From Hypanus sabinus (lineage: Eukaryota): a DNA stretch of 64,000 nucleotides. The DNA lies in the NCBI RefSeq assembly GCF_030144855.1, contig NC_082719.1, forward strand, positions 54,932,001 through 54,996,000, written 5' to 3'. Of this stretch, positions 4,401 through 63,749 are shown piece after piece; the stretch's first letter is position 1, and each line of letters opens with the position of its first letter. Position numbers and translations under genes: made by a program. The notes beneath the pieces were generated by a model. It saw only the letters and a list, made by a program, of their open reading frames with translations, was not told the origin of the DNA and searched no databases.

Positions 4401-7400
4401 TCAGCCAGCACTCAACCTGAAAAATAAAAGGACTATTTCACTGAACAATGAAAAAAGATGAATATGCCTAAAATAATAGGCAATTAAAATATGTATCATA
4501 CTTGGTTAATGGGATTTCTGCTCCTGGACCTCAGCGCACAGCATCTGCACATCAGGGCTGTATGACGTCACCTTCATCTTTACACAGGATCGCAAGCTGT
4601 CATCTGTGAGGCGTGCACGATGTTTGTTTTTAATAAAGTTCATGTTGGAGAACACCTGCTCACATACATATGTGGATCCAAAGATCGACAGGACTCCAAG
4701 CGCATACTTTTTAATGTTTACATAAATGTCGGGGATAGCATTCCATGTTTCGAACACAAGATTGTCCGGTCTTAGGAGGTTTTCAATATCACTCCATTTG
4801 TGATTCTGAGCAAGAACGGCCTTCTGACGGGCAACATCTTCAAGGTCTGCTGTCCGGAAAACCAACGACATACGCTAGTTATATTGCTGCTCAGGAACTG
4901 GTCAGGCACGGGAAGCAGTTTACAGATGGTGAATATATAAAAGAATCTTTCATTAAGATTTCAGAACATCTATTCACAGACTTTAAAAACAAGAGTGAAA
5001 TTGTGCAGAAAATCAGGGATATGCCCCTCTCTGCAAAGACTGTCAAAGACAGAACCATAAAAATGGCAGAAGACATCACAAGACAGCAAATTAAAGACAC
5101 CAATTCAGCTGTGGCCTACTCGATTGCCTGTGACGAGTCTAAAGACGTGATATTGAACAAATAGCGTTGTTCTGCCGGTATGTAAACTCTGCTGGGTCAC
5201 AGGAAGAACTGATTCATCCATTGCTTGAAATGATTTTTGCTCAGATCAACCTTCCGCATCAGTTCCGAAACGGCTTTTTTTCTCTCATCTCCATCCGGAT
5301 ATTTTTGAGCAAAGGCTGCATGTTTATTCTAGAAATGCCTTGCAACATTTGACTTTTTGTTGTTTGCTAGTTTCTCATTGCATATTAAGCATACCGGTAA
5401 ACCAGTCTCGTCAACAGTGAAAGCAAATGAATCTGTCCACGTATCATTAAACGTTCTGCTTTCTTCAGTCACTTTTCTTTTTTTAGAATTCTCCATAGTT
5501 GGCCTACCTTGGATCGAAAAATTAAAGAAATCGCGCACTGACGGGTGTCAGGTATTGGCAGTGGTGACGTATATTAATAGCGATAAAAACTCGTTGTAGC
5601 GGTGTGCTCACGCAGTCAGTAAACTGCAGTCGAATAACTTTATTCGAACTAAACAGCCTTGCTTTTAAGCCTCCCTCAACCTGGCCCCCATGGGCGCGGA
5701 TGCTGCAAAAGACCAATTATTTCCCAAAGCAACAGGGAGCCGCAGCACAGATGTAAAAGATCCCCGTCTTAGTGAAAAACCTTTAAATTGGGCAGAACTT
5801 GTTAGGTGCATCAGGAGGCTTTCTTTAATAAATACCTACATAGTCCAACAAGAGAAGCTGCATCTGACCTGGTGTTGGGCAATGAGCCTGGCCAGGTGAC
5901 CGACCTTCTACTGGGTGAGCAGTTAGGCAACAGTGAATACAATTGCTCAACTTTTAAGACCACTATATATAAGCTATGTACGCCCGAAACTCAGACAATT
6001 TCTACACGTTAACTTCTACAATTTTCATTCCTCAATGCCCCAAAGAAAAATGAAATTAGTTTTTATATTGAGTAAACAAATAAAATTTACTAAATTAACT
6101 ACTTTATATTGTAAAGATCAATATGATGTAACATCTAAGACATACCTTGTGTGTCATATATGATGGTGAGGAGCTCCCATTACTTGTCACAATTCCAGCA
6201 CTTTCCTGACCTCTGTAAAATATTTTTGAAAGTTTCAACAATAATTATAATAAGTACATGGTTTAGAAATGAGATCAAGTGTTTTTACACTGAAAGCAAT
6301 TACCCTCTATCACTCCATAACTTTAGAGTTTTAAGTAGAAATTCAAGCCACTAATAAAAAATATAATGTACAATTAACACACAGGAGTTACTTCTTTTCC
6401 AAGAGGATCTTCTATCAAAAAACTCTCCAATGTAAACAAATATTCCGAATATCTCATGCATGCAGTACTGCTTCTGTACCTGTTTGTTATATCTGGCAAA
6501 ATACCACACAATAGCCAATTTTATCATTTCTCAACAATCTCTTAGTTTGCAGTATTACAAACCTGAGATTGGCAATACAGTGTAATACCCAAAAGCTCAT
6601 AGATAGATTACTTATTATTTTTTATCTGCTATAGGAAGTTTGATTTCTCTTGCTAGACAATAGTATTCCTCGCTACTGCCTTGAAAATAAGACACCGGTG
6701 TATCTTGCATTGCATTTGGTTTATACAACTGAGATTAAATTCAGGCTAATAAATTAAAAGCAACAGTACTGCAGCTGTTTTTTCTGACATTGGAAATCTG
6801 AAATAATAATCAATGCAGTTTACTCAATAAAAAGACAACAAAATTAATTATTACATCTGGAGAAAATTTACTCAGGTAAGAGGGATAACAGAGAAGACAT
6901 TTCAGAAGGAAATCAATTATTTTACAACTTTATTTTAATAGGAATAGATTAAACTATTAACACACAAAAATGTGCTCTTTGTAAGTAACACAATGAACTT
7001 TGTAGTGCAAATAAATCACACAGTTCTTGATAAATGGGTTTAATCTAGCAAAGAGCAAACAACATTGTTACACAGTTGGTTTTTCACTGGATAACCATCA
7101 GGCTATCAGGTCTTAGTGTCAGTAACCCCTTTCTCTGTATAACCCTAATATATTTAACTAACTTCGAACATCCTAGTTCAACAAGGAGATAGAGAACTAT
7201 TCCAAGTAAATATACACTTAAATTTCATATTAATATGCTTAACATTTGTTCTCAATCATTTTTTACACAAAGCTTTACACTAATGCTTCAATTTCAACAT
7301 GATGAACAAACACCACAGTGAACTTGCCTTTACAGGTATTCTGCAAAATTAATGAGGTAGATATGAGGTATGTTCAAATCAGAATGTGCACCAAAATAGT

Positions 7401-13400: not shown

Positions 13401-14634
13401 CTTACTTGGAAGTTGTCTAAATCTTGCTGCACCAAACGTCCAGAAACCATAACAACTGTCCTTTGTGCAAGACATACATCCCGTTAGTGAAGGAAATAAA
13501 GAACAAGAGAAAATACAAGGATAAATCTAAGATATTTGTGTGAGAGAAAGCTTGTGTGTAGAGAACTATTTGGTTGAAATAGTATGTTCCACATGATCAA
13601 TAACTAGATTACATAGGAGGGATCTAATACACGTGGTCAGAACATTGCTCCGGAAAACAGACCATAAAAATTAGTTTAATTGTAAGGGAAATTTTTCATC
13701 CAAACACCGGAATGCAACTTTCTTTATATACACAGGACTGGCACTGCAAGTGTATGAAACTGCACTAACTTAATAAAACTCCCCCATTCAGTTAAAGGAT
13801 GTAGGGATAGGGCAGGAAAACGGTGCTTGAAGCTGTTAACTTTGTTGCATTTAACAGTATGAACGAGTTGCAATAGATTCAACCAAGGGGCCAAAATGTT
13901 TAAATGCATTTTACTGCAAATATTTAATATTGCTACTGCACTGACAAATGTGGAATAAGTTTATAGGAAGCTGATTTTCACTGAACAAACCACTCAGTTC
14001 GCAAATAGTAGCAGTTAATTTTTCCCCTGGCGTTAAATACCGGCAAAGTACAGCCAGTTTTAATGCCACATTCAATAATGTCAAATTAGTCCAGAGATAA
14101 CATTACCTCTACTTCCTCTTTCCACAAAGGTTGTTGGATCTGCTTTTGATCGAATTTCAGCACATGCGTGACTGCTTTTGCAGTGAAAATATATAACTCG
14201 GAAAAAAACTACCCGCCCCATATAATTAAATAGCATCAAGAAGATCAACCAGAAGGTTTTAAGGCTTGAAAAGTTTCTCTGCCTACACACGCCACCCGAT
14301 TAATTACGTAACCTTACAGTCTGGTTTGGTTTCGGGATCTCCAACAACTGCAAAACCTAACGAGTTCGTGCAAAGACTGGAACAAAAAGAAAACAGATAT
14401 CAGAAGGGCATTTCCCCACTGTAAAACTACAGAATGAGCGCATCCGTCTGCAGAGGCTCATTTTGCAATCTGCAGCAGAGAGGGACCGGGCTGGGCCAGC
14501 GCTTACCTGTGCTGCAACGCTACCAGTCCCAGGGCGATAACGTGCGGGACGTTCAGATGGGTCGGCCACGTGCCGGCCGCCACACAACCGAACACGCCGC
14601 ACTCCTCACCGATGCCCGACTCTTCAAACTCCAT
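1247..14634 (-). CDS. PPAT: Amidophosphoribosyltransferase, 5' part of gene (coding exons 1-3; gene continues off the left edge)
   Basis: Spliced exons 14634-14507, 6212-6146 and 1453-1247 with GT-AG boundaries join in frame: [16 protein letters not shown] (propeptide then catalytic Cys of the Ntn hydrolase)...[13 protein letters not shown]...GMGLV...GIGHTRYST...[22 protein letters not shown]. Confidence 0.97.
2780..3180 (-). mobile_element. CR1 LINE 3' end fragment
   Basis: Reverse-complement similarity to the CR1 3' end at 10950-11390. Confidence 0.7.
3330..5960 (+). mobile_element. Degenerate CR1 LINE endonuclease region interrupted by a Penelope-derived element and the hAT
   Basis: CR1 EN-like motifs (gccattacagag, gttgtcatggggga, aactggga...ttagtg|aaaaacc...cttgttaggtgcatcagg) resume on the far side of the hAT TSD. 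Confidence 0.7.
4036..5766 (-). mobile_element. hAT DNA transposon (Charlie/SPIN/GTF2IRD2-like transposase), internally deleted and partly inverted
   Basis: Left TIR CAGGGGTCAGCAACC; 8-bp TSD TCTTAGTG at 4028-4035 and 5767-5774. N-terminal zinc finger (PVCLIC...NVARHF) and C-terminal dimerisation domain ([12 protein letters not shown]) on minus; middle segment (FTDGEYIKE...SIACDES) on plus. Confidence 0.92.
6146..6212 (-). CDS. PPAT: PPAT coding exon 2 (67 nt)
   Basis: Not in the ORF track; reads (R)[22 protein letters not shown] between a CAG acceptor and a GTATG donor. Confidence 0.94.
9757..11392 (+). mobile_element. CR1 LINE RT fragment nested in an older LINE fragment (9465-9757, 11400-11540)
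   Basis: [41 protein letters not shown] and SVLGP motifs; the counterpart at 32267-33195 lacks the middle. Confidence 0.9.
11655..11940 (-). mobile_element. SINE fragment (also at ~33460-33710, ~18240-18515, ~47240-47495)
   Basis: Recurrent core ggactgtgggagga..ccagagcaccc.gaggaaaccca found at several loci in the window. Confidence 0.6.
12200..12702 (-). mobile_element. Non-autonomous Tc1/mariner-like element fragment
   Basis: Terminus cctaataaagtggc and Tc1-like internal sequence; missing from copy 2 because of a larger deletion. Confidence 0.6.
14507..14634 (-). CDS. PPAT: PPAT coding exon 1 (128 nt)
   Basis: ATG at 14634; [43 protein letters not shown]; donor GTAAGC follows. Confidence 0.96.
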
Positions 14635-27400: not shown

Positions 27401-29177
27401 AAAATAATTGATCACAAGCTATTCACCCCCTTTAGTGTGACACACCAAATCATCATGGGTGGAGCCATTTGGTTTTAGAAGTCACATACTTAGTTAAATA
27501 GAGATCTGTTTTTGGAGACTTGTGTACAATTGTAGTAATGATACACCTGTATCTAGAAGGTACAGCTACTGGTAAGCCAGTATCCTGGCAAAAACTACAC
27601 CATGATGACAAAAGTCTCCAAACAACTCCATTAAAATGTTATTGAAAAGCATCAGTCAGGAGACGGATAGAAGAACATTTCCAAGTCACTGAAAGTCCCT
27701 TGGCGTACAGTTAAGTCAGTCATCTAGAAATAGTAAGAGTTTGGCACAGCTGTAAATCTGCCAAGAGCAGGCTGTCCTCAAGACCATGCAAGAAGGGGAT
27801 TAGTGAAGGGGGCCACCAAGAGGCTTACAACAACTCTGAAGGAGTTGCAAGCTTCAGTGGTTGAGATGGGAGAGTCAATGCATATGTAACACTTACCCAA
27901 CAGGCTGGTATATGTCTAGGGGGAAAAGGAGATCCAGCCACTCGCCAACCCCACCTCCTGTACACGCAGGGGCTGTGGGAATCATGGTTATGCAGCGCGT
28001 ACACACACAATATCAAACTCACACCAGATACGGTTATGGAATACACTTTAAAGAGTTTACTAAAACTAAAAAAGTACTAGACAATACAATATGAAAGAAA
28101 AAGCAAAAGGCGCCAAACTTATCAAAGTCCAAACCACTTCGTGCACAACCGTTGGAACTCAATTATTGAAGTCTTCTGGCCACCATTCGACCCCCTCCGA
28201 ACTCCTCGACTCGCAGTTCAGGACCATCCGAAGTGGTCAACCAAACACATCTATCTTCGTCTCCTCTCCTCGGGGTACCTCCTAGCCTCGGACCCCCGCT
28301 TGAGGTCTGTTCCTCGCCCAGTTTACAGTATCACATCCTCTCTCTCTCACCCCCTCGCGCCGATCTCCCAAAAGCCCGCCAACAATAATTTACAGACTCA
28401 GAAGAAAAAACAACATTAATCCCAATTGGTTAACAAAGGAATACAATTCTCCTTATCAGTAAATTTTAACCCAAACAAGCTTCCAGCACTCTCTCGCAAC
28501 AAAAACATTCCTACTTTTAACAAAACAAAGAAGCCATTCTGAGTAACATACACAGTAACAATGAAAAAGAAGATACCCCAGGTCCATAGGACCTGGAAGG
28601 CTTGTGGAGGTAGAGGGTAAAATAAATGCAGCAAAAGATGTTATTTCTAGTGAGACAATGTCCTCAAGCATAAAACCAAAGCAACAAGGGAATAGCATAA
28701 AAACAACAAAATCAATGTTCTGGAGTGGCAAAGACCAAGTCCAGATTCAATCTAATTGAGAATTTGTGTCTAGATTTGAAAAGGGCTGTACACTCCCGAT
28801 CCTTCGCAATCTGACAGAGCTTGAGCAGTTTTGTGAAGAATGGGGGAAGAAAGTGCAGTGTCCATATGTGCAAAGCTCCCGGTGTTTTTAATTCAATCAT
28901 AGTAAAAGTGGAGAATTGGGTAGAGGGTGGAGGTTTGTCATTTTCTTTGTGATTAAAATGTATTTTGTTCCTTGTGCAAGGTGGACATTTTCTAAATGTG
29001 CCATTTGTTTTCCTAGGTCTTGGCTGCTCCACTGTTCTGTTTCCTGAGGCAGCTGCCCTTTTTGCTGCTCAGATCTTTGGTCAATTTGACCATTTAGTGT
29101 GGGTCAAGCTACGGGCAAACATTTTGAAAAACTGGATCTCCTTGAAGCAAGCTGACAAGCTGTTAAGAAACATGTGA
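15458..29177 (+). CDS. PAICS: Bifunctional SAICAR synthetase / AIR carboxylase, intact copy 1 (423 aa)
   Basis: join(15458-15473,17411-17608,18538-18716,21155-21334,21411-21524,22377-22460,22818-22998,25820-25978,29017-29177) = 1272 nt, all GT-AG, no internal stops. Motifs [61 protein letters not shown]. Confidence 0.97.
16010..17265 (-). mobile_element. Penelope-like retroelement 3' fragment (GIY-YIG end plus terminal repeat)
   Basis: [19 protein letters not shown]...[15 protein letters not shown]...GLLYC...KLEE; copy 2 (36311-36425) keeps the VIYCIQC GIY-YIG segment. Confidence 0.8.
16218..16850 (-). mobile_element. Rex1/Babar-type LINE 3' fragment nested in the Penelope relic
   Basis: [12 protein letters not shown]...RINKLIRK...[10 protein letters not shown]...[20 protein letters not shown]; AATAAA plus (TGTC)n tail. 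Confidence 0.8.
17411..17608 (+). CDS. PAICS: PAICS copy 1 coding exon 2
   Basis: [19 protein letters not shown]...[22 protein letters not shown]...LLQEAG. Confidence 0.96.
18538..18716 (+). CDS. PAICS: PAICS copy 1 coding exon 3
   Basis: [14 protein letters not shown]...[26 protein letters not shown]...FLK. Confidence 0.96.
19476..20374 (+). mobile_element. Tigger/pogo-like non-autonomous transposon, copy 1 only
   Basis: TIRs CAGATAGTCCCCAAGTTACGAA / TTCGTAACCCAGGGACTGCCTG followed by TA; HTH remnant ([15 protein letters not shown]); empty site at ~38270. Confidence 0.88.
21155..21334 (+). CDS. PAICS: PAICS copy 1 coding exon 4
   Basis: [13 protein letters not shown]...[19 protein letters not shown]. 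Confidence 0.96.
21411..21524 (+). CDS. PAICS: PAICS copy 1 coding exon 5
   Basis: VEFGV...[25 protein letters not shown]. Confidence 0.96.
22377..22460 (+). CDS. PAICS: PAICS copy 1 coding exon 6
   Basis: [28 protein letters not shown]. Confidence 0.96.
22818..22998 (+). CDS. PAICS: PAICS copy 1 coding exon 7
   Basis: [23 protein letters not shown]...[14 protein letters not shown]...KAEYE. Confidence 0.96.
25820..25978 (+). CDS. PAICS: PAICS copy 1 coding exon 8
   Basis: [25 protein letters not shown]...WSSLRMPS. Confidence 0.96.
26460..26533. mobile_element. 74-bp hAT MITE (second copy 43096-43169)
   Basis: Termini CAGGGGTTCC / GGAACCCTTG; perfect 8-bp TSD GTCTAGGC. Confidence 0.85.
27400..28875 (+). 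mobile_element. Degenerate Tc1 transposon interrupted by an LTR-like insert (~27885-28580)
   Basis: Tc1 N-terminal HTH remnant and WPxQSPDxNxIEN-like C-terminal remnant; the insert starts TGTAAC and is absent from copy 2. Confidence 0.7.
29017..29177 (+). CDS. PAICS: PAICS copy 1 last coding exon
   Basis: [22 protein letters not shown]...[14 protein letters not shown]. Confidence 0.96.
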
Positions 29178-32100
29178 TCAAAAAGTTTCAAAGGACACTT
29201 CGGTGTATCTTGCATTGCTCATTTGGTTTATACAACAGATTAAATTCAGCTAACAAATTAAAAGCAACATTACTGCAGATGTTTTTTCTCTGACACTGGA
29301 AATCTGAGATGATAATGCAGTTTACTCCAAAAAGACAACAATTATGTCTGGAGAAAACTTACACAATTGAGGGGTAACAGGGAAAACATTTCAGAAGGAA
29401 ATTATTTCAGAACTTTATATCAATAGAATAGATTAAACTAGTAACACACAAAGCACTCTGCAAAAGTAACACAATAAATTTTGTAGTGCAAGTAAATCAT
29501 GCAGTTGTTGATAAATGGGTTTAATCTAGCAAAGAGCAAACAACATTGTTAGTTGTTTTTTCACTGGATAACCATCAGGCTATCAGGTCTTAGTGACAGT
29601 AACCCCTTTCTCTGTATAACCCAAATATATTTAACTAACTTTGAACATCCTAGTTCAACAGAGATAGAGAACTATTCCAAGTAAATATAAACTTAAATTT
29701 CATATTAATATGCTTAACATTTGTTCTCAATCATTTTTACACAAAGCTTTACACTAATGCTTCAATTTCAACATGATGAACAAACACCACAGTGAACTTG
29801 CCTTTACAGGTATTCTGCAAAATTAATGAGGTAGATATGAGGTATGTTCCTCAAATCAGAGTGTGCACCAAAATAGTTTCCCATATATAAGCAACCTTAG
29901 CTGAAACATAGATACCTGTTATGAATGTTAAGCATGGTTAATGCAGTCTAATCTGGGCTTCAATTTGTTATTTTGAGACAAAAGTCCAGCATTCCATTCA
30001 CCATTTGAAGGTTTTCTTAGCCTGTCCCTATATTATAAAAATTAATATCTGCAAACATTGATTCTCATCCCATTTCCAGTAAGTCCTCTAATATTTCAGA
30101 CGTCATTCCATAACTCCTGCTCACACATCACTGGCTTTTACAATTCTCATTCAGACAGCACCACCACTTTAATCATTTACACTCTCTGCATCACTATCCA
30201 TCACATTCATTCTTTCCAACACCAATGCCCGTTATCTGCAAATGAAATTTCAGAATTATCATCGTCTTATAGGATGTTAAATTTGTTGCGTTGCAGCAGC
30301 AATACACTGCAAAAACTGAAATTATTACTTGCAAAATGAATACTGTTTAAGGTATGTGTATCTGCAATACACAGACCAGCAAGGACAAGCATTGGTTACA
30401 TTAATCAAAAACACTGTCTGAAGTTTCTTCTAATTTGGATCTGATTAGTTAGTAGAAAATGTGGTCAATTTGATAATAGTTAATACATGAAAATTTGACT
30501 GCTCCCTGCTGAAATCAGAAGCCATTTCCCACTTCTATCTCACATTCCACTGCAAGAATTTGCAAACTTTCCAATCCAGACTCTGATCTTTGGCTTCCTC
30601 TTCATTTGTTCTTTTGTACAATTGCTCTGGAATTGACAGCAGCTTTTCTGTATTAAGACTTATTCTGCCTAAATTCTACCATTCTTATAAAAGTGAAAAT
30701 AGAAGTTCCAAGAAGGACCCAAAATTATCTTTCGAGTTTGCAAAGATACTGAATGTTGCTAAGAGCAAAACTTAAATTGAATGCTGAAGATCTACAATAT
30801 CAAACAGTCACTGAACAGACACAAACCTGTCCATATTAACTGGTCTCCTTGGCTTCAGTTCTGTTCAGATAACAATGTTTGTCATAGTGCAACAAATATC
30901 ACAACTTATTTCTTATTATCAAACAAAAACTGATGCATCTTTGTAGTACATTTCTAAGGCAAATTTCCAAATGTTTTTCAATAGAAAGAGGTTTTGGAAT
31001 GTCTGAAGGGAAGAAAAGGAGTGAACAGTTAGTGGTATGAAAGCACTTAGGAAGCAAACTGTAACGGAAAAATTTGTTTTGCAGAATTAATTGCCTAGAA
31101 AGAACAAGTCGGTCAGGAACAGTATTTGTGTAACCTTTGAATAGATTTTCAAATAGGAATGTGGAGGATACAAGAATGAAACTACCCGTGATGCAATCAA
31201 ACATTGCTAAACAATGTTTAACTTATTAATTACACTGGCATTAGGAGCATTTCCAGTCCATCGGTACTATTGCAAGGTTAACTGAAACAAAAATAAAATG
31301 AATTGCATTCAGTTTTTGATTTATTTTTTCTTATAATTTAGCATGTTACACCTGACTTTTAGTAGAAGCACTGCAAGGAATCTGTGCTGGGAGTTTTTCC
31401 TTGGCATGAAAGATTCTAGTCCTTAAGCTCTTCCACAGCACCAAGAGTTTGATCCAAAGTAGTCCTCACCAGTACATCCTCCCAGTAAATATTTTATTTG
31501 AAATATGTACTCATAGTGAACATAACATCAAACTCGCTACACAGAACTGTGTGAAATGCACACACCAAATTAGAAACGTGGAATTCAAGAGGAAAATTGT
31601 TTTGATACTGGACAAGTCATCCACACATTAGTAGCAAGGTCAATATTTATTGCCAATTCCTATTGAAAAGCTGGTGGCAACCACTTTCTATAACTGTTGT
31701 AGTTTTCTGGTTAAAGTACTCCATAAAGCTGTTTGTTGGATAATTCCAAGACTTAGATCCAGCAATCACGAAGGAATTACGATTCACTTCTAAGTCAACA
31801 TAACGTACAACTTGTAGAGAATCGGAAAGCTGTGGTGTTTTTATGTACCTATGCCTTTGCCTTTTGTGGCATTACAGAACACTAATTTGGGATGGTTTTA
31901 TTAGGTAAATAACTGAAATACACTTGGGTACCTCTTGTACCTGATCATTCTTTACAAGCTTTACCACGATGAAGCAGTGGAAAGGGTCTCCAGCATCAAC
32001 TTCTTGGGAGTGGACATCACAGCAGAGCTTCCTTGATAGCAGGGAAGGCTCAGCAGCACCTATATTATCTTAGGAGTTTAAAGAAAGCAAATCATCCCCA

Positions 32101-32266
32101 AAAGCCACTGATAAACTTTTACCGATGTGTAATTGAGAGCATGCTGACCTACTGCATGGCAGTATGGTACACTAGCTGCAGTAAGATCAACCAAAAAGCA
32201 TAATAAGTTATCAGGACTACACAGAACATTAATGGGATACAATTACCAGATATAGACAACACCAGC

Positions 32267-33195
32267 AGTGTGCCTGATGTTGTAACGTGAAGGAAGAGCA
32301 GTAGGTGCAGTTACTATCACAAGGGAGAAGGTGCTCAAAAATCTGAAAGACCTAAAGTTTAGTAAGTCATCTGGACCAGGTGAACTGCACCCTAGGGTTC
32401 TGAAAGTGGTAGCATTAAAGATTCTGGTGGCATTAGAAATGATCTTTCAAAAACTCAATGGACTCTAGCATGGTGCCAGAGGACTGGAAAACTGCAAATG
32501 TCACTCAACTCTTCAAGAAAGGAGGAAGGTAGCAGAAAGGAAATTATGTACCAGTTAACCTGACCATTTTAGCATTCATCTGAAGAAGTCTAGAATAAAA
32601 GAACAAGGATGTGATGTTGAGGCTTCACCTTGAGTATTGTGAACAGTTTTGGGCCCCTCATCTTAGAAAAGATGTTTTGGCATTGGAGGGGGTCCAGAGG
32701 AGGTTCACAGGGATGATTCCAGGAATGAAAGGGTTGTCATACAAGGAACGTTTGATGCTCTGGGCCTGTACTCGCTGGAATTCAGAGAGATGGGGGGGGT
32801 GGGGGTGGGATCTCATTGAAACCTTTCGAATGTTCAATGGCCTAGAGAGAGTAGATGTGGAAAGGATGCTTCCCATGGTGGGGGAGTTCAGGACAAGAGG
32901 GTACAGCCTCAGGATAAAGTGGCGCCCTTTCAAAACAGATGTGGAGAAATTTCTTTAGCCAAAAGGTGGTGAATTTGTGGAATTTGTTGCCAGATGCAGC
33001 TGTGGAGGCCAGGTCACTGGGTGTATCTAAGGCAGAGATTGACAGGTTCTTGATTGGATATGGCATCAAAGGTTACGGGGAGAAGACTGGGAACTGGGGT
33101 TGAGGAGGAGATTAACAAAAAGGATCAGCCAAGATTGAATGGCAGAGCAGACTTGATGGGTTTAATTCTGCTTCTATGTCTTATGGTCTTATATG
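32267..33195 (+). mobile_element. CR1 LINE fragment (copy-2 counterpart, internally deleted)
   Basis: Collinear with 9757-11392, with ~0.7 kb removed near 32565. Confidence 0.85.
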
Positions 33196-34194
33196 GAAAC
33201 CATCTACAACTCACAATGTCTACAGCAGGCTCGGAAAAATCGTAATCTCATCTGACCCCAGCAATAACCTGTTCAATCTCCTAACATCTGGCAGGAGGTA
33301 CAGGGATATCTCTGCATGAACATTCAGACTGAAAAGCAGCTTTCACTCCCCCCCCACCCCCCACGGCTACCGTGCAACTGAGCAATGCCCCTCCATCCAC
33401 CCATAATTCACAGGCACTATGGGCAACCTCTAAGTACAATACATGGGCATAATTTTACTTATTGCGATACAGTGCAGAGTAGAACCTTCTAGCTTTCCAA
33501 GCCACACAGCCCAGCAACTGCCGATTTATTCCTAGCCTAATTATGGGACAATTAACAAAAACCAACTTACTTACAAACGGGCACACCTTTGGACTGTGGG
33601 AGGACACCAGAGCACCCGGAGGAAACCCACACAGTTACGGAGAAAACATACAAACTTTTTATAGGCAGCAGCAGTAATTGACCAACTAGATCAATTGGTA
33701 CAAGGAATGCAGGATTTGAATAATTTGTCTTCTTTTACATCCTGGCTGTCTACCCTGTTGGTGTGGTGCTTTGTTGATTATATTATAGTTATTAGGCTTA
33801 TTGAGTATGCCCACAAGAAAATGTATCACAGGGTTGTATATGGTGACATATCTGTTCTTTGACAATAAACTCACTCTGAACTTTGAAGGTAGGTGATCAT
33901 GCTTTTTTGGAGATGGTCACTGTCTACCACTTCTGAGGGATGCATGTTACTTACTACTTGGCCCTTACTTGGAAGTTGTCTACATCTTGCTGCACGAAAC
34001 GTCCAGAAACCATAACAACTGTCCTTTGTGCAAGACATACATCCGGTTAGTGAAGGAAATAAAGAACAAGAGAAAATACAAGGATAAATGTAAGATATTT
34101 GTGTGAGAGAAAGCTTGTGTGCAGAGAAATATTTGGTTGGAATGGTGTGTATGTTCCACATGATCAATAACTAGATTACATAGGGGGAATCTAA

Positions 34195-35043
34195 GGCTAC
34201 ATCCACACTAGACTGGTTAATTTTGAAAACGCCAGTTTCGCGTAAAAACTAGGCGTCCACACTATGCGTTTTTAAACGTATCTCTGTCTACGTTCAAACG
34301 GAGATTTCGGCGAAGCTCCTCCTACTGCGCATGCGCAGGACATCTACCGAAAACAAGCGACATGCTTTGTGTCAAATCTCGCCATGAAAGTATGCATTTG
34401 TTCAGTTACAGACTAGAAAAACTTAAAACTGGTGGCCCTCCCGCAGAAGAACTTAAAAGTGAAAAGAAAACAAATACTGGAGCGTATGGAGACAACCGAC
34501 AGGGAGTTCACAGACAGTATGACCCGGCTGACGACGAACATTGAAAAACTGACTAACTCTGTTGAATTAATAAAGCACCTTGTTAAATGTATAAAACATG
34601 TCTGCATCAGTGTTATCTTGTATTTCCATACAATGTTACATTAGGCTGCTACGCATCTATTGTCAGAGAAGTACTTACATAAATAGGTAAACCACCTTCA
34701 TGCGAGTAAGGACAGAAAACGGCAAAATGAGTATACTTATTTATTCAGTACCTTTCTAACTCTTCTGGTGTCAGTTTTGTTGCCGTCTGTTCTGAGATTG
34801 TTAGGTTGCGTTCAAGAAAACAATGAAATAGCGCGCTGCTGTCTGATAGCATTTTCGGTTTATCCGGTTACCCATCCACACTGATCTGCCCGAGCAGCGT
34901 TTTCAAAAATACCCACCCTGGAAAGTGTTTCTGAAAAGCTCTGGTTTCGGAGGACGAAAACACCGTTTTAGTGTGGACAAAGGGTAAAAACGAAGAGAAA
35001 AAGCTTCGGTTACGGATTTATCCAGCGTAGTGTGGACATAGCC
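34195..35043 (+). mobile_element. PIF/Harbinger non-autonomous element, copy 2 only
   Basis: Imperfect 22-bp TIRs GGCTACATCCACACTAGACTGG / CCAGCGTAGTGTGGACATAGCC; 3-bp TSD TAA (34192-34194, 35044-35046); empty site gatcTAAtac at 13621-13630; internal coiled-coil remnant 34432-34644. Confidence 0.9.
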
Positions 35044-35653
35044 TAATACATGTGGTCAGAACATTGCTCTGGAAAATCATAAAAATTAGTTTAATTGTAA
35101 GGGAAAAAATTCATCCAAACACAGGAATGCAACTTTCTTTATATGCACAGGACTGACTCTGCAAGTGTATGAAACTACGACACATTAACTTAATAATACT
35201 CTCCCATCTGTAGTTCAGTTAATTAAAGGATGTAGGGATAGGACAGGAAAACGGTGCTTTAAGCTATTAACTTTGTCGCATTTAACCCTATGAACTAGTT
35301 GCAATAGATTCAACCAAGGGGCCAAAATGACGTTTTAATGCATTTTACCGCAAATATTGAATATCAGTACTGCACTGACAAATATGCAGAAAGGTTATAA
35401 AAAGCTGATTTTCACTGAGCAAAGCATTCAGTTTGCAAATGGTTGCAGTGAATTTTTCCCCCCAGAATTAAAAACTGGCAAAGTGCAACCAGCTTTAATG
35501 CCATATTCAATAATGTCAAATTAGTCCAGCAGTAACATTACCTTTATTTCATCTCTCCACAGGCGTTGTTGGATTTGCTTTTGATCGAATTTCAGCACAC
35601 ATGTGACTGTTTTTGCAGTTAAAAGATATAACTCAAAAAAAATACTACCCGCC

Positions 35654-36170
35654 TGTAACCAGAGAGCTGTGCCTGTCCCGTGACAGCACTGCCCTCACCT
35701 GTTCGGAGGTCACTCCACCTGCCAGTCAACATTTCGCCCCTCCCAACTAATCAATGCACACTTAACCATTGGCCACCTTAATTGGATTAACCTGTCTAGC
35801 ACCAAACCATTGGCCCCCTGACCTATAAAGGGTCCTACATTGTGCTTGGCTTCCTCGAGGGATCAGTCTGCTTCACTCTAGGTAAGGTGTGCATTGAATA
35901 GGGTTGTGGGAGCGTTTATTGTTGTCCCTTTAGCAAAGAGCCACACTTGCCCATAGCCAAAGGGGGGGGGGGGGGGGCAAGTATTGTAGTTCCTTTTCCC
36001 CTGCTTGTATGTGTACCTGTACTCCATCCCCACACCGTTTTCCTATCATTTGTACTGCAGAACTGACTTTTCCCACACTCCTCTATTCTAAATGCATTTG
36101 TAAGAACACTTGTGTTGTTTTGTTGTTCCCAAGTTTTTTCTCCCCTTGTAAATAAACTCATTATTAAAAT
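35654..36170 (+). mobile_element. Solo-LTR-like insertion, 3'-truncated, copy 2 only
   Basis: Begins TGTAAC exactly where homology to copy 1 stops; CCAAT-type boxes, TATAAAG at 35824-35830, donor AG|GTAAGG at 35882, AATAAA at 36151-36156. No clean right end or TSD. Confidence 0.6.
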
Positions 36171-36222
36171 AAGGCTCATTTTGCAACCTGCTCCCCCGTC
36201 TTGTCAGGGTGCATCTGCAACA

Positions 36223-36310
36223 GGGGGCTCGGCCAGCGCTTACTTGTGCTGCCACCCAACCAGTCCCAAAGTGATAACGAGCCGGCCAGCACACAACCAA
36301 ACTCCTCACC
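36223..36310 (-). pseudogene. PPAT: Decayed relic of PPAT exon 1 inside copy 2
   Basis: ggccagcgcttacttgtgctgcc...accagtccc...gccggccagcacacaacc...actcctcacc aligns with 14494-14610, with deletions and no ATG. Confidence 0.85.
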
Positions 36311-47573: not shown

Positions 47574-48506
47574 CAAAAATATACAAGCTAACTGGAACTT
47601 TGTAACCTCTGTAACCTTTGTAAAAGATTTCTACAGTCAGTGCCTGGCATACTATACCAGCAATTAAAATCTGGAAAATTACAGAGCAAAAATACAAACC
47701 ATCACATGACCAAATATACTGTAACCAGTCAATTGAATTGTTTTTTTAAAACAAAAACAGCTTTGTAGTTCACTTTTAAAGCAAACAAATAATTAAATTT
47801 TAAACTAAATTTACATAAATCCCAATCTTAAAAGCATCCAACCATTGAGGTTGGTTACTTATAATGAAAACCTTAAATAATAGAACAATTATAATTGCAT
47901 AGCACAGGGATACATTCTAGTTTTTTGTATTTGTAAAATACAATTAAAGGAATCCTAGTGACACATACACATTGTTTGCACGTTGGGATAATAAACCACT
48001 GACATCTTATTTTCTGTTTTCTTGCTTCCTTTACCAACTTGTGAAAGAAACAAGGAACAAATCCAGCCCAGGTTCATCCTTTTTGACTACTGAACAATGG
48101 CGATGGCATCGATGGATGGTTCTTGTGGTCAAGTTAACTGCAGATGAAAGGAAGTAGTCTGACAAATAACAGAGGCTTGCCTTTGCATTGAGCCACCACT
48201 TAAGATTGAGATACCAACAAGTCTTAAATATCCATTCAAATCATAATCAATTTTTAAATTTATAACTATATTGCTGAGTTTAGAACAAACCCACAGTACT
48301 TAATTCACTTTAGCAGTATCCAAATGATCAGCATAACTTCTAAAACAATGCAAATACAAAAAAAAATCTGAAATCTCTTCCAAAATGGTTTATTTACAAC
48401 CTTTCTTGGCTAAAAATAAATGAGTTTCTTCCTTCCGTTTTTGAACTATACAAAAGTAGCAGTTCATATAAATTAGCAGATCTTTTAATAAAGTCCATTT
48501 GGTTTT

Positions 48507-63749
<15,243 letters not shown>

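Follow-up and report, generated by a model that had tools for sequence, protein, structure and literature searches.

A duplication joint within the target-site duplication of a COX6B1 retrocopy at the stingray PAICS locus, and its possible origin from a single break

The 64,000-nt stretch of Hypanus sabinus (Atlantic stingray) DNA analyzed here (contig NC_082719.1, positions 54,932,001 to 54,996,000 of the forward strand; "the window" below, to which all coordinates refer) covers the PPAT (minus strand)/PAICS (plus strand) locus and carries a head-to-tail tandem duplication, the joint of which lies within the target-site duplication (TSD) of a processed COX6B1 pseudogene situated just beyond the distal copy. 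We propose, with a probability that we put slightly below one half, that one staggered break, made by a poly(A)-dependent (L1-like) endonuclease of a long interspersed element (LINE), produced both rearrangements. The fuller version of this proposal, to which we give a shade less credence, would make the locus a germline-fixed case, which we take as a rough estimate to be ~100 million years old, in which one LINE-endonuclease break with a replicated left end may have given a pseudogene and a 15-20-kb duplication at once and forced PAICS, an essential gene of purine synthesis, onto a 3' untranslated region (UTR) composed of antisense intron DNA. Each structure taken separately is ordinary; the combination, if causal, would be a new natural germline case of an event known from human cell models and tumours. 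The features on which the argument is based are as follows.

6683-6694, plus strand: proximal breakpoint A (6688|6689) in the PPAT gene body, context GAAAAT|AAGACA
6689-29190, plus strand: copy 1 of the duplication (22,502 bp; delimited by self-BLAST, exons by tblastn)
13624-14217, plus strand: most diverged paralogous block (partner 35043-35653; 12.2% substitutions)
29175-29200, plus strand: PAICS stop codon (29175-29177), first 11 nt of the target site (29180-29190) and the blunt joint 29190|29191
29191-29478, plus strand: new 3' UTR of the working PAICS, antisense PPAT-intron DNA (AATAAA at 29473-29478)
29191-44722, plus strand: copy 2 of the duplication (15,532 bp), with a decayed PAICS copy
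44712-44728, plus strand: 5' copy of the TSD (AATAAGTTTCACCTTCT); the position equivalent to the joint follows 44722
44729-45323, plus strand: COX6B1 processed pseudogene (595 bp, full-length)
45324-45341, plus strand: A-run (6 A versus 5 in the target), then the 3' copy of the TSD (45325-45341)
45342-45600, plus strand: native PAICS 3' UTR resuming after the insert, homologous to the skate and sawfish 3' UTRs

Structure of the duplication and of the COX6B1 insertion

Self-BLAST revealed a collinear head-to-tail tandem duplication in the window, and eight coding exons were located in each copy by tblastn with a PAICS protein of a vertebrate. Copy 1 contains the 5' part of PPAT (minus strand) together with the bidirectional promoter and a PAICS coding sequence that is complete and expressed. 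The end of this coding sequence (...KLLRNM) is identical to the C-terminus of the PAICS protein that NCBI lists for H. sabinus (P0139). The two copies are distinguished by ~10 copy-specific indel segments in 15 kb. The segments found only in copy 1 align to Pristis (sawfish) and have therefore been deleted from copy 2, which lost several ancestral segments in this way, including the promoter and exon 1. The NCBI gene layout for H. sabinus agrees, with PPAT, PAICS (423 aa) and then a second PAICS-like gene (321 aa) 7.5 kb downstream.

Copy 1 ends in ...TCAAAAAGTTTCA and passes bluntly into PPAT-intron DNA 13 nt beyond the PAICS stop codon: positions 29172-29190 read ATG TGA TC AAAAA GTTTCA and are followed by AAGGACAC... 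from 29191. As this continuation is the same as the sequence from 6689 onward (AAGACACC), the joint must be 29190|29191 and the proximal breakpoint 6688|6689. Analysis of the two breakpoints, A and B, detected 0 bp of microhomology at the joint (a T precedes 6689, and a C follows the GTTTCA equivalent in copy 2), no homology between their flanks in the self-BLAST comparison and no repeat at either of them. This combination fits end joining and excludes homologous recombination, and repeat-mediated (non-allelic homologous) recombination was rejected on the same grounds. In Pristis the sequence is continuous across site A, which is thus ordinary unique intron DNA; its bottom strand reads TCTT/AT exactly at the joint, a weak match to an endonuclease site of a kind that is common in AT-rich DNA. 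No retrotransposed sequence is present at 29190|29191. Just past the joint, four small indels fall within 60 bp (Poisson p ~0.001). We considered this cluster as a signature of mutagenic repair synthesis and rejected it, because at least one of the indels (TT) is ancestral in copy 2 and was lost in copy 1 according to Pristis; the cluster reflects an old, little-converted edge of the duplication.

At the end of copy 2, positions 44707-44728 read TGA TC AATAA GTTTCA CCTTCT, the retrocopy begins at 44729, and AAAAA GTTTCA CCTTCT follows it at 45325-45341. The two TSD copies match at 16 of 17 positions, and with up to 2 mismatches allowed the 17-mer occurs in the 64 kb only at these two sites, versus 0.07 occurrences expected by chance. 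The preliminary description of this DNA had given the length of the TSD as 14-17 bp; the repeat at both flanks stands, and the ambiguity of the A-run widens the range to 12-17 bp, with a poly(A) tail of only 1-6 A. The target, read in copy 1 and in Pristis, is TC/AAAAA, a TT/AAAA-like endonuclease site. The insert comprises a 5' UTR-like part (44729-44816), an open reading frame (ORF, 44817-45074) and a 3' UTR with AATAAA at 45289-45294, and it is intronless, whereas the parent COX6B1 gene spans 9.7 kb. Its ORF is colinear with the 85-residue ray COX6B1 (P0003), with 11 of the 85 residues changed, one of them to an in-frame TAG at 44907-44909. A 574-nt contig from an RNA-like sequencing run (X5, depth 159) matches 44816-45329 contiguously and then goes into poly(A), so the insert ends at the true 3' end of the parent mRNA. 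The COX6B1 insert is an intronless full-length mRNA copy that ends at the parental poly(A) site and has a TSD at a TC/AAAAA target, features expected of L1-type target-primed reverse transcription (TPRT); the L1-type insertion of the preliminary description is supported in this respect.

The first 87 nt of the retrocopy (44729-44815) are unlike the 5' end of the parental X5 contig, which diverges just before the ATG (44816), and probably represent an alternative non-coding first exon of COX6B1. An Rfam search of 44500-45500 returned no match and thus gave no indication that the retrocopy begins with a small-RNA chimera. Position 44907 (in the TAG; CAG in the parent) is C in some contigs of related organisms, which are not distinguishable from exons of the parent gene, and the ORF may thus still be open in relatives. 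Two further intronless COX6B1 copies (P0004 and P0005, with 258-bp and 225-bp coding ranges) were found on other chromosomes of H. sabinus, one of the two within a DEAH-helicase gene but on the other strand; this lineage has thus retrocopied COX6B1 mRNA repeatedly.

The preliminary description had placed the duplication breakpoint within the TSD of the retrocopy, and this is confirmed: the joint 29190|29191 falls 11 nt into the 17-nt TSD, 11 nt from TC/AAAAA and 6 bp upstream of the 5' end of the retrocopy. The two left-hand joints (after 44728, and after 29190, equivalent to 44722) are thus separated by 6 bp; they point in the same direction and delimit the duplicated segment.

All of the 10 sampled 31-mers of 29111-29270 are present in four source runs and in X5, which belongs to a separate study. 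In X5 all sampled words of this interval are covered, and the depth is zero on the last exon of copy 2 and on the native 3' UTR; it follows that copy 1 is the expressed gene and that its transcript reads across the joint into the new 3' UTR. The notion that the duplication or its joint is an assembly artefact, for which no supporting observation turned up, is hardly credible, given that the copies differ by 3% substitutions and many indels, that the joint 31-mers recur in five runs from two studies (one of them RNA-like), and that the assembly of Hemitrygon akajei has the same two-gene layout. The duplication joint is real.

Ages and distribution of the two events

The divergence between the two copies is a mosaic, ranging from 0 to 16% per 250-bp window with peaks at block edges, and it is 0-1% in two long stretches that include PAICS exons 4-6 and exon 8. 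KLLR is encoded by both H. sabinus copies, versus KQLR in H. akajei and Mobula. The pattern indicates that the copies are under concerted evolution (gene conversion), and the 3% mean therefore underestimates the age of the duplication; a uniform 3% was rejected as an age estimate in view of the spread among the 250-bp windows. The block 13624-14217 was used instead as a minimum duplication age. It differs from its partner at 72 of 590 sites, with the derived changes split 37/23 between the copies, and its Jukes-Cantor distance is 0.133 (0.104-0.169) pairwise, i.e. ~0.067 per lineage. The possibility that this 12% block is a transposon or a product of hypermutation in copy 2 was rejected, as it has no other copy in the window and is orthologous to a Pristis intron, and as its changes are split between the copies.

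Between the retrocopy and the parent mRNA, 42 of 514 sites differ (31 of ~500 without a misaligned poly-C tract; 16 of 258 in the coding part), and the corrected distance is 0.065 (0.044-0.092). Most of this divergence is assigned to the retrocopy lineage, since H. sabinus and Mobula hypostoma have identical parent proteins. Comparison of the retrocopy with its parent and of unconverted blocks with each other had been put forward in the preliminary description as a way to challenge a link between the events; the values of 0.065 and ~0.067 per lineage leave the link standing. Judged by these distances, the ages of duplication and retrocopy appear indistinguishable, with overlapping and wide intervals.

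In Pristis (TGATCAAAAAGTTGTACCTTATGAAAAG), in a skate mRNA and in a skate-like genome the target site is empty and single-copy, with the native 3' UTR directly following. The gene layout of Mobula (PPAT, PAICS and then directly a LONRF-like neighbour) indicates no duplicate, and that of H. akajei, with the same two PAICS genes as in H. sabinus, indicates a duplicate. The second PAICS-like gene of H. akajei encodes 440 aa and starts 629 bp past the stop codon of the first; the distal copy may be more intact in this species than in H. sabinus (321 aa).

The retrocopy was also found in three related organisms (G, H and C), whose contigs differ from the window by ~2-4% and span the two ends of the insert. 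In organisms H and C the contigs end at 44700 and restart at 44671; the fork at 44701 coincides with the first base at which the paralogs differ, and the contig to its left, which is shared, has ~2x depth. This suggests that both paralogs are present. A search of representative proteins with the last exon yielded no close relative of use. None of 10 words spanning the joint was found in organisms G, H and C, a result that is not interpretable with so few words in a fast-evolving stretch (in H. sabinus the PAICS C-terminal stretch is evolving fast: 3 of the last 30 residues have changed relative to H. akajei). None of the lineages covered (sawfish, two skates, Mobula, H. akajei and organisms G, H and C) has been demonstrated to carry just one of the two events, and both events map to the dasyatid stingray stem. 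The distribution on the tree, put forward as a test in the preliminary description, thus does not refute a link, with H. akajei and Mobula placed by gene layout and organism G ambiguous.

A single break and the competing explanations

In the mechanism that we propose, the break would have occurred in the PAICS 3' UTR of a stem dasyatid stingray. A nick in the bottom strand at TC/AAAAA, 3 nt beyond the stop codon, would have left a T-rich right-hand end that primed reverse transcription of COX6B1 mRNA; the top strand would have been cut 17 nt downstream, leaving a left ("reciprocal") end with a 17-nt 3' overhang. This left end would then have gained two descendants, either by replication of the unligated end or by collapse of a fork at the top strand while this was still open. 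One descendant would have been ligated without loss to the cDNA and would give the insert with its 17-bp TSD; the other would have lost 6 nt and undergone homology-free end joining to a break ~15-20 kb upstream on the sister chromatid, a second joint that would create the head-to-tail duplication with the retrocopy just outside the distal copy. In the fork-collapse variant, the bottom strand (cDNA and filled-in target) would be sealed first and the bottom-strand sister would carry the complete insert, and the top-strand sister, ending in ...CCTTCT, would lose 6 nt and be ligated to the other sister at A. Later, copy 1 would have kept the PAICS function with a new 3' UTR and copy 2 would have decayed, with gene conversion holding the copies mostly similar. 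That the two joints descend from one break, that replication was involved and that the partner was the sister chromatid are our inferences. The observed layout is as this model predicts: the retrocopy lies outside the duplication with its 5' end facing the duplicated DNA, and the joint is free of retrotransposed sequence.

The proposed mechanism has experimental precedents. In human cells, full-length processed pseudogenes are generated by L1 ORF2p, and the "reciprocal end", which retains a short 3' overhang, is attached through end joining (Mendez-Dorantes et al. 2024, PMC11702581); the TC/AAAAA target, the 17-nt stagger, the full-length insert and the homology-free 5' joint of the stingray retrocopy match that description. 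In the same system reciprocal ends also join elsewhere without an insert, with breakpoints "within the range of TSDs" of the endonuclease motif and with a 64-kb tandem duplication among the products, and the processed pseudogenes have discrete TSDs of 12-18 bp. The stingray joint is likewise an insertion-free, low-homology, end-joined junction inside the TSD range of an endonuclease motif. The human events, however, are somatic and were observed directly in L1-overexpressing, p53-null cells, whereas the stingray case is ancient, germline-fixed and read from sequence, with a putative LINE. In breakage-replication/fusion (Zhang et al. 2026, PMC12807874), replication of one DNA end yields two "adjacent parallel breakpoints", and pairs of this kind delimit duplications; the 5' joint of the retrocopy and the duplication joint are an adjacent parallel breakpoint pair. 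The resemblance lies in breakpoints of the same orientation a few bp apart that bound a duplication, one of them marked by a reverse-transcribed insert. The differences are that both stingray joints keep at least 11 nt of the overhang, that the partner end at A is unexplained, and that the spacing is 6 bp versus 429 and 2,059 bp in the published L1 example. L1-mediated duplications and deletions (Rodriguez-Martin et al. 2020, PMC7058536; Gilbert et al. 2002) likewise involve a TPRT intermediate resolved with a distant DNA end, but in such duplications the insert sits at the junction, whereas in the stingray it is off the junction, clean, flanked by a full TSD and located at the far end of the distal copy. 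An ordinary processed pseudogene combined with a non-homologous tandem segmental duplication and concerted evolution would account fully for each structure alone, including the conversion mosaic, but would leave the 6-bp spacing and the matching orientation unexplained.

Several observations weigh against a single break. Both joints retain at least 11 nt of the 3' overhang, and plain replication of an end leaves one sister without it, so that the model has to invoke either a fill-in step or collapse of a fork. It also requires a further break, at site A, and the case for a link is built on a single coincidence that was recognized in retrospect. No L1-like LINE has been shown in the H. sabinus genome, for which no dedicated search was made and to which the two further intronless COX6B1 copies point only indirectly, and the poly(A) tail of the insert is unusually short. 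The age errors are wide, and the duplication age derives from a single 590-bp block. In organism G the last exon and the retrocopy are joined in one contig that shows no fork, another contig is missing, and this organism might have the retrocopy without the duplication; such gaps prove nothing, and tandem copies can collapse (unequal exchange). Finally, we estimate the rate of chance coincidence at ~0.1-1% per duplication, and as many duplication joints of this genome have been inspected, one chance case would not be surprising. Judging from the local density of copy-specific indels, ~1% of breakpoints would lie in the TSD of one insertion or another, and the layout predicted by the model would account for about a quarter of these. 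The odds depend on a guessed rate of kb-scale duplication per TPRT event, which is uncertain by an order of magnitude either way; we estimate them as near even, raised about two-fold by the overlap of ages and lowered slightly by organism G.

The most serious competitor is a chance juxtaposition, 6 bp apart, of two unrelated events, i.e. an end-joined duplication and a processed-pseudogene insertion that occurred in either order along the long dasyatid stem. We regard this explanation as tenable, and as somewhat less probable than a single break. Each structure is commonplace alone, at least two further intronless COX6B1 copies exist in the genome, and nothing at the joint itself requires a LINE endonuclease; the dense local indels give the above chance of a breakpoint in a compatible TSD, and with hundreds of duplications noted in this genome about one such case is expected. 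The preliminary description had called a chance coincidence unlikely, which is too strong in view of this rate, of the number of joints inspected and of the wide age errors. What speaks for a link is that the spacing is only 6 bp, that the orientation and the side are those predicted by the linked model (about 1 in 4 chance layouts), that the ages are indistinguishable, and that no single-event lineage was found.

Two further explanations were weighed. A favoured endonuclease site may have been cut twice, with an abortive cut that was trimmed and mis-joined to give the duplication and a productive cut that gave the retrocopy. The TC/AAAAA target and the 17-nt stagger fit L1-type cleavage, the joint lies between the two inferred nicks, and ORF2p makes many insert-free breaks (PMC11702581); however, the target preference of L1-type enzymes is weak, exact re-use of a site would be little likelier than chance, and equal ages would be left without a reason. 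We consider this explanation improbable. The preliminary description had offered one nick or a recurrently cleaved site as the common source of both events: the mechanism has experimental precedents and the overlapping ages do not refute a link, but the order of the events and their single origin are unproven. Alternatively, the retrocopy may have come first and selection may have filtered a later duplication, as only a break within the 19 nt between stop codon and insert would yield a complete PAICS gene without the retrocopy in its 3' UTR; a breakpoint of this kind would almost have to lie in the TSD. It agrees with this that the retrocopy-free copy 1 is working and expressed and that the retrocopy-bearing copy 2 has decayed. 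Yet there is no evidence that the insert harmed PAICS; it went to fixation, and at least four organisms retain it. The scenario also needs a retrocopy older than the duplication, whereas the oldest paralogous block is at least as old as the retrocopy. We judge it slightly less probable than repeated cutting of one site.

If a single LINE-endonuclease break is indeed the source of both structures, retrotransposon endonuclease breaks would make gene duplications in the germline and not only in cancer cells, and an experimental model of segmental duplication would become a testable evolutionary one. They would also leave a readable "cryptic" signature, a duplication joint inside the TSD of a neighbouring insert, that could be searched for genome-wide in any species. 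If the link is false, the locus is still a clear tandem duplicate with concerted evolution, the working copy of which lacks its native 3' UTR.

Downstream sequences

Downstream of the duplication, exons of a LONRF-like (RING/LON-domain) gene are located at 47669-49799 on the minus strand and align to a skate-like locus (L002). The same gene is the neighbour directly after PAICS in Mobula and in L002. Two segments, 43985-44450 and 46208-46441, have contig depths of 10^4-10^5 in three related organisms and are very high-copy repeats (SINE-like, i.e. resembling short interspersed elements) common to these stingrays.

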